A DNA stretch of 62,948 nt, filler included, from Reticulomyxa filosa (lineage: Eukaryota > Protista > Foraminifera): the NCBI GenBank assembly GCA_000512085.1. It is 21 parts of 21 records of this genome, joined end to end, with 100 filler letters (N's around TTAATTAATTAA, not from the genome) between each part and the next. Parts side by side here need not be neighbours in the genome. Positions count along the whole stretch, not along the records: positions 46,086 to 50,518 come from ASPP01021518.1; 20 more parts are not named here. One strand, given 5' to 3'. The notes under the pieces were generated by a model. It ran no database searches. It was not told where the DNA came from and worked only from the letters and a program-made list of their open reading frames with translations. Shown here piece by piece: positions 45,986 to 51,371 of the stretch; position 1 is the stretch's first letter, and every line of letters starts with the position of its first letter. A program made the position numbers and the translations under genes.

Positions 45986-46615
45986 NNNNNNNNNNNNNNN
46001 NNNNNNNNNNNNNNNNNNNNNNNNNNNNNTTAATTAATTAANNNNNNNNNNNNNNNNNNNNNNNNNNNNNNNNNNNNNNNNNNNNACACAACCTCACTTT
46101 CATTCAAATAGAGGATTTAATCTTACTTCGTACGAGCTTATGTTTTCAATAGGTTTTAATTTACATTTTTCTTTTTGGGTGTATATTTATGAAGCTTGTG
46201 AGTAACTAAATAAAAATAAAAGAACAAAAATTAAGTTCTGAAAGTGAACTGCACAAGCAAAGGATAAATGTGGATAATAAAAAAGCATCAAAGATTCATG
46301 CAAATGGCATGATAGTGATTTGATGTAGTGTAATGTTATATATACTATTTGGCAAGATTTTCGAGGTTATGAACATATACATGTACGTATATGCATACAT
46401 ATATATAACCGCGATTATTTTGGCACAGAACAATGTCGTAACATTATTGTATCTGTGATGACCATGGGACCAACATCACGATAATTTGGAGTAGAATTTG
46501 TGAAGCATATGTCCGCACATGGATCGGTTGAATTTCTGTGAGTTGAATAAAGTTTAAAAAAAAAAAAAGAAAGTTTGACAAAAAAAAAAGTGTCCCACCC
46601 AATCAAAAAAAAATT

Positions 46616-48459
46616 TCAAAGTATGATCGAAAACTGAGAAAAAAAAGGATGACATGTCGAATTAAATGCAAGTGAATGTTGGTTGTTGAACGCATCCCAA
46701 AGCAAATGAACGTTTCCGGCAGTACACTCACCGGCCAACCAAGAATCACAAACACCATCCAGCAAAGTCGCGTTTGGGAATGGCAAAGGGCAGTCGAAAT
46801 TGCAATTGCGTGCAAATGCGAACGAGGCGTTGTTTTCGCAGTCGATTTGCGCATAGTGTTGCGTTTGATCGTGGTGGCTTTGGTAGGGATCCGTGCATTG
46901 GTCGGTGTTTCCAAGCAAAACACAGCATAACAACATACAGGCCTGGCGATAATGAACCGGCTGTTTCAAGTGTCGCTTCTCGTGTTCCAAGTTGATTGCA
47001 TTTGTGGTGGGGCTCGTGGCATTGCTCAAAGTCTGGCTTGTGCTATGGATGTCACTTGCATGCAAATTCAATTCGATGCCCGAGTTCATTAGTGTGTCGT
47101 TATCCACATGCGTCTTGCCATCTTCGGTGCAATCATCACCCAATATGAACATGTCGCTGCTGCTTTCGCTTACGTGTGAATTGTTTCTTTGATGTTCCCG
47201 AGGGTGCACGAATATGTATTTATGTATACATATATGTATACGTATAAAAGAGGGGAGGGGGAGGAAGTGAGAGAAGGAACAGAAAAGGGAGATTTAACAT
47301 TTAAATATACAACAAAAAAAAAAAAAAAAAAAATAGTTCCAAACATAAAAGTGCTATGATTGGATAATTCGGTCATCACAGAATAATATGCAGGATGGCT
47401 ATTTGCAATGTTCATAGCTTGTAAGCGTTTACACACTACGTCTTTCAGCTCATCAATAGACAACGTATAATCACTTAAATTCAACACATTCTTGTTTTTT
47501 CCAAAACACACATATGTGTACATATGTCACGATAATATTAAAAATAACCAATCAAACAAACAAATATATGTGTATACATATATATATATATATATGTATA
47601 ATTAACAGTTTGTTTGTATCGGTGGATCGCAGCACTTATTTGTGGGACTTGCTCAGACAACCACTGCTTCCTACAGCGACGGTTATTTCTGGAGGCTTCG
47701 GCAGATCGGCGATTGCGCGCTTTCCTCTGAAGTTGTTGCTTTTCGCGTATTTCTGCCTCTGTCGCGTCTGGATACTGGCTGACGATTTTTCGATTGATAC
47801 TTCGAGGCTTACGATGTTTTTTGTTTTCGTTCTTTTTGTCGTATTGGTGTTGATGTCCATATTCACATTCATGTCCATGTTCATTTTCTTGTTCGTGTCC
47901 ATTTTCTTGTCGTTCAACTTGTCCCTGTTGTTCTTGTTGTTTTTGTTGTTCTTGTTGTCCTTGCTGTTCTTGCTGTTCTTGCTGTTCTTGCTGTTCTTGT
48001 TGCTGTGGCTCATATCGGCTAAACATATCGAGTATTTGTGGAGGTAATGTCAACAAAGCTAAGGAAAAGATTGACTCACTTTCATCGGGCTGATTTTCCA
48101 TTTTCAATCGCTTTGTGCGCAAGTGTATATTTGGACTGGCGACAACGGCCTCAGACACCGCGTCCATCTCATTGCCATTGCAAAAGTGGTGGCCACTGGA
48201 ATACTGTTCGAACCCCCGTTTGCGGGCGCAGCCGCTCTTAGATACGTGTTGACTGCGTGTCTTCGACGCATTCCTTTTCAGCTCGTAATACTTTTGCTGA
48301 CAACTGGCAGGAGTCCGTCCGGGCAATTGGTTCGAAATTTCCTCCCAATTTATTTCCCCATTTTCCGTCGATGCACTTTCGATATTTTCCAACAAACTTT
48401 GTGTTTCTCCTTCTGTCCAGCGACGTCGAGATGTTTTCTCTTCATTATATATATACATG

Positions 48460-48491
<32 letters not shown>

Positions 48492-50230
48492 AATATATAC
48501 ATATATATATATATATATGTATATACAAATGTATATACATATATAAATATATATTTATATATGTATACTTTTGAATAATGGCTGTGGAGTTTGTGTAATG
48601 GAGAGACTCAGATTCAAATTGGTGCTGGATGGTGATATGGACTCTTGTACGATTGGAGGCTGTGCTAATGGACTGTTATTGCAAACACTTTGAAAACACG
48701 GGAAGTGGGAAGCTTGCAGCGATTCGACTTTGACAAGAGGGAGATGGAGAGACGCTTGAATTGGACATTCTGGAATGTGCGGAAGGGTGAATTTGGCGTT
48801 TAACATTTGCATTACGTCGTCAGGATAACCACGGATGCGAATGTTGGCGTACTGGTCGATAGCCGTTGGGTGCAAGCTGATAACGCATACCCCATTTTTT
48901 TTTTTCCCGCTCATCATTTTGCATAGATGGATACCGAGGCCTGTTTGTACGCAATTGTCCACAACCAAACACACATCCGCCAACGCCAGTCGTTCTTCCA
49001 TCGTTTCAATGCCAATCTTGTTGTCTTTTACCTCTGTGTTCCAATGGTGCATTACCGTCAATCCATTGATGTCTATTGTTTGTATATTGTTTACAAGGAT
49101 TTTTTTTTTTTGGATTACGTGTAAGGTTTTGAACTTTGCCAGGTACCTGTCACTGCTCTTTGTTGGCCCAACGTACTCTCGGAAAAGTTTGGAATCAGCC
49201 CATTGAAAAGTGATCTCTCCCTGTCATCGTCCCTTTCATACAAGGTATCCCCGATTTCCAACAACCAATGCTTTAAGTATCCTGCCTTTTTCAATGTCAT
49301 CAATGCCAAATACGTCGGGCTTGGTTTCATTGGGAAATGCCAGCCATTGCCATTTATCAAATGAAATTTTTCTCCAAAAAGATTTGCCGACATACTCCAA
49401 TCTCCTTCTATATTCATTCATACGCACAAATACATAAACAACCCAAAGATTTTCTTTTTTTCTCTCTCTCTTTTTTTTTTTTTTTCGTCTGTGCGTCATT
49501 GCGTCAAGCCTTGTACTGACGAACAAAACAAAAAAGCGCTTGGGTACGTATACGTCTTTGGTGACGCAGATTATATTTTCTATTTCGCAAGCACGCTTAT
49601 GCAATAAAATATGTATCAAAAGGCTTTTTTTTTTTTTTTTCCTCTCTCTCTTTCGAATCTTGCTGTGGTTTTTTTGTTTTCTTCTTACACTTGGATACCT
49701 GCACAAAACACGTCATCACAACGTATTAGTTTTTTTTAACAATGTGCCGACTTCCACATTTTTTTTTTTGTATTAAGAAAACAAAAAAAACGGAATGTCT
49801 GACCATTAAACCAAAAAAAATGCAAAATTAGGAGTTGATGATGTGTTTCCATAAGAATTAAAGGAAAAAAAAACTTCATAGGAATGGAAACAATCATATC
49901 TTGGTGAAGCTTTCGAGATTTCTCGTCCCTCTTCCCCTTTTTCATTTGTTTGTTTTTTTTTATAAATTTTTTTGTTCCTTGATGGCAAAAAAATGACCGG
50001 GTTCATTGTATTGCTTGTGGTCGAAAAAAATCTTTTTTGTTTCTCATGGACCACAGAAAGACCAAACACAGTCAAAAAGTCCTACCATAAGCAGAAGCGC
50101 CACCGATGTCTGCACTTGTTAGTGCAATCATGTGCTTGGAAGACGTGATGACTTTAACAAGTTGAGTCACTTTCTCTGCGAGGCTTTGACCGTTGTCCAT
50201 TTCTGTATTGCCCTTTAGAAACGGCCACAT
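46616..50230 (-). CDS. Degenerate class IV (SIRT6/7-like) sirtuin domain - Myb/SANT - Q/E-rich - bZIP fusion protein, ~819 aa
   Basis: Exons 50230-50086, 49407-49147, 49072-48569, 48439-47607, 47490-47345, 47186-46616; all introns GT-AG and phase-compatible. Sirtuin: [69 protein letters not shown]. Myb: RWTEGE...[20 protein letters not shown]. bZIP: [15 protein letters not shown]. The 3' end is uncertain. Confidence 0.7.
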
Positions 50231-51371
50231 TTTTCCTTTCCCAGTAACAAAATTGTTGTGATATGTCCACCGGTTATGTAGTTTTTTTTTAAATTTGTGA
50301 GACAAACAGCGACACGTTCGTGCCAAACGCTTTCTGGAAGCTTAGCTTCTCGTTTTACTGTACACCCAAGTTTTGAACAAAACTTGAGGGTTTTGGTTTC
50401 AACAAAAACTAGATCTTTTACAATGTAACAGTTCTGAAAAACGATTTTGAAATATAACTATGTTTATGGGAATAATTTTTTAAATTGTTTTAAAAGTGCA
50501 ACTGCTACAATCAACAAANNNNNNNNNNNNNNNNNNNNNNNNNNNNNNNNNNNNNNNNNNNNTTAATTAATTAANNNNNNNNNNNNNNNNNNNNNNNNNN
50601 NNNNNNNNNNNNNNNNNNCAAGACGTCCTGAATCCAAATCTGAAATCAGAAAGTTTCTACGAGGAATAGATAGTGAGCATTATTCAATTTCCCATTAAGC
50701 TATAAAACATGATTTTTTCATAGTACACTGACTGTAAAATGGTATACTCATAGATTGAAAAATAGGTTTATTTTTTATTATAAAGGTTTAAGTTGAAATC
50801 GTTTTGGCAAACTTACAATTAATATTGATTAATACATGATGGATAAAACACCGGACAAATACTTTGTCATATTTTTAGCTAATTTGGAAAATGAGGTTCA
50901 GTATGTTTGCCAATTTGTTTTTTGTGATAACATTATGTCAAATTGCATTTTCATAAAGCAAGTCAGTTAAAATCTTATCACATTAAGCATGACTTTGGTT
51001 TCATGCCCAAATAAATGACTATTTGCTTTTTTATTATTGCCATTATTATCATTTGAAATAAAATGACAAATAAACAATTGTTTTTTAAATGGTTATACAA
51101 ATTGAGATATTACGATTTGTTGCGTTGATTTGATGATCATTATAGAAATGAGATATCAGAATCGTTACAAGCTATCCATGACAGTATGCCTGTTAGAGAC
51201 AGTATCAAAATACTGAGCTTGGCTGGTGAGCGAGCTTTGCAAACGTATATTACCCAAGTTTTTGTGTTTGTGTGCTTACAGTCTTGCTCATTTATGTTGC
51301 ATATACATATATGTATATATATTTTATAACTAGTCCAAACTATTCATCCATTGTAATGGAATATCATAATG

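Follow-up and report, generated by a model that had tools for sequence, protein, structure and literature searches.

Sirtuins rank with the most highly conserved enzymes of chromatin, and it is normally separate factors that recruit them to DNA. In known sirtuin structures, the glycine and QN loops hold the pyrophosphate and the ribose of NAD+, and roles of the sirtuin fold that do not depend on catalysis are usually approached with engineered His mutants. Bacterial one-component regulators such as Rex and NrtR sense cofactors and carry winged-helix domains, and in these proteins ligand binding is kept.

The GAG.S, QN.D and HG motifs are hallmarks of the sirtuin family (PMC4781818), and His133 of SIRT6 acts as the general base (PMC8389836). 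SIRT6 docks on the nucleosome acidic patch via its zinc finger and contacts DNA through R220, R231 and R248 (PMC10942634). In the HUSH complex, the pseudo-PARP domain of TASOR has no NAD+ site, yet silencing requires the domain (PMC7532188). Among foraminifera, multiple sirtuins of Allogromia laticollaris are upregulated during the genome reorganisation known as Zerfall (bioRxiv 10.64898/2026.10.21.760831).

Here we describe a locus in a 62,948-nucleotide stretch of DNA, hereafter the window, from the foraminifer Reticulomyxa filosa (assembly GCA_000512085.1). The piece of the window spanning positions 46086-50518 holds a single predicted gene, on the minus strand. The reading that we prefer, with a probability of about 0.5, is that of one gene whose product is a nuclear regulator of transcription, about 819 amino acids long, in which a dead sirtuin fold would serve as a protein-interaction scaffold.

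Gene model

Joining the six exons in a script (145+261+504+833+146+571 = 2460 nt) gave 819 codons with no internal stop. All five introns show GT..AG borders and the phases (1, 1, 1, 0 and 2) match across the junctions, which reproduces the uninterrupted six-exon frame reported in the preliminary description. The GC content is 0.43-0.46 in the exons, with the exception of exon 5 (0.34), as compared to 0.09-0.33 in the introns. The joined frame was used solely for the stop count, and every search presented below was carried out on single exons. The features of the locus are as follows.

50086..50230, minus strand: exon 1, with the start codon, the first helix and strand of the predicted sirtuin Rossmann domain, and the altered glycine loop TSADIG
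49408..50085, minus strand: intron 1, 678 nt, GT..AG, GC 0.33, stops in all three frames
49147..49407, minus strand: exon 2, with the PSPTY helix, the LEIGD strand, the His-less LFNG segment and a shortened, Cys-free zinc region
48569..49072, minus strand: exon 3, with the predicted C-terminal half of the Rossmann fold of the sirtuin (as far as about 48780) and, beyond it, a linker rich in P, S and Q
48440..48568, minus strand: intron 3, a 129-nt imperfect TA array, the one stretch that connects the sirtuin part with the Myb part; GT..AG, phase 1/1, GC 0.09
47607..48439, minus strand: exon 4, an open frame with the Myb repeat, a linker, the QQE repeat and the bZIP-like basic region
48279..48428, minus strand: single Myb/SANT repeat (PF00249), about residues 308-357
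47904..48002, minus strand: QQE-coding 9-nt tandem array (TRF, period 9, 11 copies)
47613..47744, minus strand: bZIP-like basic region, pattern N-x7-R-x9-L, followed by a degenerate zipper; about residues 536-579; PF00170 below the cut-off
47345..47490, minus strand: exon 5, the least certain, possibly continuing the zipper helix; GC 0.34, stop-free in 2% of shuffles, weak donor GTTAAT upstream
46616..47186, minus strand: exon 6, a 189-codon C-terminal region ending in TGA; GC 0.46

The match of exons 1, 2 and 3 to a class IV sirtuin profile, described below, is colinear, and therefore supports junctions 1/2 and 2/3. In addition, the matches of exons 1 and 2 lie only about three profile columns apart, so that no sizeable exon appears to be hidden in intron 1, and the additional exons that had been suspected there are not needed. 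Candidate exons within this intron were rejected, as they show no sirtuin likeness and the colinear profile leaves no sizeable room for them. Retention of intron 2 was also rejected, since it introduces an in-frame stop.

The gene model is at its weakest in exon 5 and the junctions on either side of it, homology support being absent for junctions 4/5 and 5/6. Exon 6 is very likely coding, because its length was stop-free in none of 5000 shuffles; it gave no family or Atlas match and contains no recognised domain. The second half of exon 6 (46616-47186, minus strand) is rich in Cys, His and aromatic residues and could be a small lineage-specific domain.

Some further observations concern the surroundings of these exons. 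The exon 5 frame stays open through intron 5 up to a stop at 47170, giving a 117-aa ORF (47170-47523, minus strand); retention of intron 5 would add a Phe-rich stretch encoded by a T20 run and lose exon 6, but the open frame probably arises by chance from the pyrimidine tract. Two short hairpins lie upstream of the start codon (50310-50350; two found as compared to 0.2 expected in a bacterial terminator scan), and possibly represent palindromic promoter elements. The Rfam search returned nothing and the plasmid search only noise.

Exons 1-3 and class IV sirtuins

Two profiles were used to assay the likeness of each exon to class IV sirtuins. The first was built on 49 full cores from 120 metagenome loci fetched with a class IV motif. 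Exons 1, 2 and 3 match its columns 4-37, 71-104 and 160-246, in this order, with E-values of 1e-7, 3e-6 and 2e-13, respectively (single comparisons), while exons 4-6 do not match it. The second profile was built on 120 intact class IV database proteins obtained in a separate search, and each of the three exons outscored all of 1000 shuffles. Specifically, exon 1 reached 22.5 bits against a shuffle maximum of 7.0, and exon 2 reached 9.4 bits against 4.9.

As a test unbiased by the choice of the family, exon 3 was searched against PDB sequences with no family preselected, and human SIRT6 was the only one retrieved at E-values up to 1 (best E 1e-3). The structural model of exon 3 (pLDDT 76), which was built from a sirtuin alignment and whose fold match is thus not fully independent, had SIRT6 chains among its 30 best Foldseek rows (TM 0.6-0.7, E about 0.01) and matched an Atlas cluster of sirtuins (TM 0.74); the Atlas features also lead towards sirtuins. 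None of the exons matched SIR2 in Pfam, and for exon 3 the NCBIfam matches were all weak and of CobB type (E 0.06-0.12). In a quick tree, exon 3 is placed within the SIRT6-like part, and its branch, at 3.56 changes per site, is ten times as long as the median one; the identity of exon 3 is 15-30% to all the relatives sampled, with about 30% as the upper limit to any of them.

All together, the colinear profile matches and the position of SIRT6 as the nearest relative by both sequence and model bear out the class IV scaffold that had been recognised at first sight, and the exon-by-exon profile and structure searches for a sirtuin fold gave a positive answer. Therefore, on profile and model evidence, exons 1-3 are of sirtuin origin and are predicted to form a sirtuin Rossmann scaffold, with class IV as the nearest class.

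Loss of catalytic, NAD+ and zinc residues

The motif used for fetching makes columns 214-233 conserved by construction in the loci of the first profile, and for this reason the motif counts were repeated on the 120 proteins of the separate search; the human motif occurs in none of the fetched class IV loci. Twelve columns are present in 119-120 of these 120 intact proteins, a near-invariance inflated by their being close kin of one query, and all of the twelve are changed or absent at this locus: G32S, G34D, S36G, H76Y, Q94E, N95I, G187D, S188N, S189C, N214S and Q216H, with H114 not retained. The core columns T31, A33, P72, D97, L99, L215, T218 and D233 are kept; overall, 9 of the 21 alignable near-invariant columns are lost.

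In terms of motifs, the GAG.S phosphate loop has become SADIG and the G[TS]S loop DNC, so that both glycine loops now carry Asp; the QN.D motif reads EIGD, the NLQ motif is also altered, and nothing corresponds to the IPDFR cofactor loop. The replacements first noticed by eye, namely TSADIG, the strand containing EIGD, and DNCV, were confirmed, as the profile places them in the expected columns with high posterior. The proposal that LFNG stands for the catalytic ELHG held in part: neither His nor Cys occurs downstream of the EIGD motif in exon 2, which has no His after residue 46, but the profile does not assign a position to LFNG itself.

Likewise, the zinc-binding CxxC pairs are absent, as previously stated: no Cys is found in the zinc interval, nor before the ADVCL strand of exon 3, and the region is about 25 residues short (D-to-G distance of 72, as compared to 98-99). 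Loss of the zinc cysteines alone is no proof of a dead enzyme, because six class IV sirtuins in our sample are also without them, and yet keep GAG.S, QN.D and HG. These members of a zinc-less class IV-like clade (L025:928-1602:-, L057:691-1365:-, L061:166-834:+, L073:479-1147:-, L093:155-808:+ and L110:143-784:+) separate HG from GTS by 33-36 residues that include 0-2 Cys, and the clade is well supported in the quick tree. Descent of the present gene from this clade was rejected, as exon 3, on its long branch, does not group there.

In conclusion, the loss of the catalytic His and of the GAG.S, QN.D, G[TS]S and NLQ motifs supports the earlier proposal of a catalytically dead sirtuin: by its motifs the sirtuin part is dead, and deacylase activity is predicted to be absent because the catalytic and cofactor motifs are lost. 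With an Asp in each glycine loop, phosphate is expected to be repelled, and the pseudo-sirtuin is probably blind to NAD+. Moreover, since the defining catalytic features fail, the gene product is to be classified, as far as its sequence tells, as a derivative of class IV sirtuins and not as a working member of the class.

Myb and bZIP-like regions

The Myb/SANT repeat noted at the beginning was borne out above the Pfam cut-off, with PF00249 at E 6e-9 (36.3 bits, cut-off 24.4) and PF13921 at 38.1 bits (cut-off 22.9). The best PDB match was c-Myb (E 6e-9), with the W..W..Y residues aligned, and SANT proteins were also among the matches. On these scores, the repeat is a true Myb repeat. The QQE repeat was located at the coordinates reported above, and is followed by a second short array of period 6 and 10.5 copies (47848-47910, minus strand), which codes for His/Glu-rich dipeptides.

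The bZIP assignment stood in one part and not in the other. The basic region shows the invariant N, the R at +8 and the L at +18 in register, corresponding to the N-x7-R-x9-L pattern, but PF00170 remains below its cut-off (E 0.04, 14.4-16.4 bits against 27.6) and the zipper is degenerate, with L, I and Y at the d positions and a Pro in the first heptad. One weak PDB match was obtained (6iak, E 2.9). Accordingly worded, 47613..47744 would encode a bZIP-like basic region and not a member of the bZIP family. A membrane-tethered bZIP was considered and rejected, as no 19-residue window in the exons exceeds a hydropathy of 1.4.

The proposed join between the sirtuin and Myb parts

Intron 3, which had been described as a pure TA repeat, is in fact an imperfect array, whose longest perfect TA run is 23 nt and which contains 12 G/C and an in-frame TAA at 48557. 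Its first GT and first AG produce an in-frame join, although chance alone would be expected to match the phases across a TA intron in no fewer than one case out of three. Introns 4 and 5 are likewise filled with TA arrays, and intron 3 can thus be regarded as the local intron type.

It is conceivable, if unlikely, that the fusion is unreal and that a stand-alone pseudo-sirtuin gene, ending at the TAA, adjoins a Myb/bZIP-like gene, either truly or by misassembly. The link is indeed a low-complexity, self-complementary array of a kind that recurs within the piece and is likely to be common in the genome; the Myb frame has its own in-frame ATG at 48458, inside the intron, and the architecture is seen at one locus, with no second one found. 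Against two genes, just 97 nt of TA would be left for a 3' end and a promoter. A misassembly across intron 3 is possible, but the array, at 129 nt, is short and imperfect enough to be spanned by ordinary reads. In addition, both parts lie on one strand, have a like GC content (0.45) and meet in a clean phase-1 join, which argues against either version. We therefore regard the sirtuin-Myb fusion as probably real, judging from these features of the DNA; should the join fail, a stand-alone pseudo-sirtuin would still remain.

Database searches found no relatives of exon 3 among 1.84 billion representatives, the homologue search with the Myb exon was blank and exact ORF look-ups gave no match. The lone homologue match, P0001 (E 6e-4, 2507 aa, in six stretches), was taken as chance.

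Proposed role of the sirtuin part

According to the one-gene reading that we prefer, the N-terminal pseudo-sirtuin, which derives from a SIRT6-type class IV enzyme, would be followed by the Myb repeat and the bZIP-like basic helix. DNA binding would take place through the Myb repeat, helped by the basic helix, with a dimerisation that is probably weak or partner-dependent. The dead domain, predicted to perform no lysine deacylation and probably devoid of NAD+ binding, may have kept or gained partners of the ancestral chromatin sirtuin, such as co-repressors or an active sirtuin paralogue, and these partners would be brought to promoters picked by the Myb part. The scaffold reading is suggested by the combination of a remodelled NAD pocket with preserved core residues, and is argued by elimination of other roles.

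The preliminary description had suggested reuse as a ligand-, acyl-lysine- or nucleosome-binding module. Binding of NAD+ or ADP-ribose is argued against, since Asp has taken the place of both phosphate-loop glycines and the contacts made by S, N and Q have disappeared. Nucleosome binding is weakened as well: in the alignment of exon 3 with SIRT6, the positions of R220, R231 and R248 are occupied by G, K and Q, that is, two of the three DNA-contacting Arg are lost. With the zinc finger also gone, SIRT6-style nucleosome docking is unlikely.

A related and, in our judgement, improbable proposal is that the dead sirtuin in a single gene acts as a metabolite or acyl-lysine sensor with a rebuilt pocket, switching the DNA binding of the fused Myb/bZIP-like part as a eukaryotic one-component regulator like Rex or NrtR. 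The pocket would then bind some ligand that is not NAD+, or acylated lysine would still be recognised by the Trp in the acyl-lysine channel. The order of the domains, sensor before DNA-binding domain, is consistent with this proposal, as are the conservation of the Trp at the 'DW' position of SIRT6 and the polar nature of the pocket replacements (Asp, Asn, Cys and His), which are not bulky hydrophobic residues. On the other hand, the Gly to Asp changes in both phosphate loops and the missing cofactor loop speak against it, and so does the shortening by about 25 residues of the small domain that walls the acyl-lysine cleft.

Maintenance of the open frame

The sirtuin part consists of about 230 codons in three exons, stop-free and colinear with the profile despite the very long branch. 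Neutral decay was simulated on real class IV coding DNA, and stops were counted per 240 codons. With 64% of the residues kept, 5.6 stops accumulated on average and 0.7% of the runs were stop-free; with about 52% kept, the average was 7.5 stops and none of the 600 runs was stop-free. An open frame on such a long branch is unlike this simulated decay, and we therefore conclude that the sirtuin part is, by the state of its frame, a maintained pseudo-sirtuin and not a simple pseudogene. That a pseudoenzyme is kept under selection here is thus supported by the 0/600 open frames at comparable loss, and the loss of active-site columns with the core kept is, column by column, the usual pattern of pseudoenzymes.

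That the sirtuin part is instead a functionless decaying relic, either a passive N-terminal extension or a region recently freed from selection, is very improbable: the very long branch, the low identity to all sampled relatives and the deletions in the cofactor loop and zinc region would fit it, but the changes concentrate on active-site columns in a stop-free, colinear frame, and selection for the downstream frame alone, while it keeps the ORF open, does not explain the kept core.

Comparison with known systems

No pseudo-sirtuin domain or sirtuin-Myb fusion is described in the searchable literature, outside of which most subscription journals lie, and the architecture, known from one locus, looks new. 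Pseudoenzyme modules in chromatin regulators are an already known kind. A naturally dead sirtuin under selection would offer a rare natural test of the sirtuin fold minus catalysis and, if the fusion is real, recruiter and recruited domain are joined in one chain.

Compared to the class IV sirtuins SIRT6, SIRT7 and plant SRT1, the locus shares the Rossmann scaffold, in the same order, with SIRT6 as the best match. Those enzymes differ in that they keep the catalytic His, GAG.S, QN.D, G[TS]S, NLQ and usually the zinc cysteines, and the probable Myb fusion sets the present locus apart. In the 120 nearest class IV proteins, a sample kept small by limits on length and rank, no Myb or bZIP fusion occurs; the extra domains in this sample are zf-UBP, EF-hand and CAP_C, found fused to intact class IV sirtuins in P0004, P0026, P0033, P0049 and P0075. 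Since intact members carry such domains, the class IV clade accepts domain fusions.

Rex and NrtR resemble the predicted product in the combination of a nucleotide-binding or dead-enzyme domain with a DNA-binding domain. They are bacterial winged-helix proteins with a ligand, whereas the present protein has lost the NAD contacts and would bind DNA with a eukaryotic Myb repeat and a basic helix. The TASOR pseudo-PARP is similar as a dead NAD+-enzyme domain used as a module in a chromatin regulator (PMC7532188). It differs in having a PARP fold, in belonging to a multi-subunit complex and in its role being shown by experiment, so that for the present protein, known from its sequence, the comparison is one of analogy only.

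Finally, single-repeat Myb-related and bZIP factors share with this locus, respectively, one Myb repeat above the cut-off and the basic-region Asn and Arg in register; what sets the present gene apart from them is the N-terminal pseudo-sirtuin, the degenerate zipper, and the presence of the Myb repeat and the bZIP-like region in one exon.
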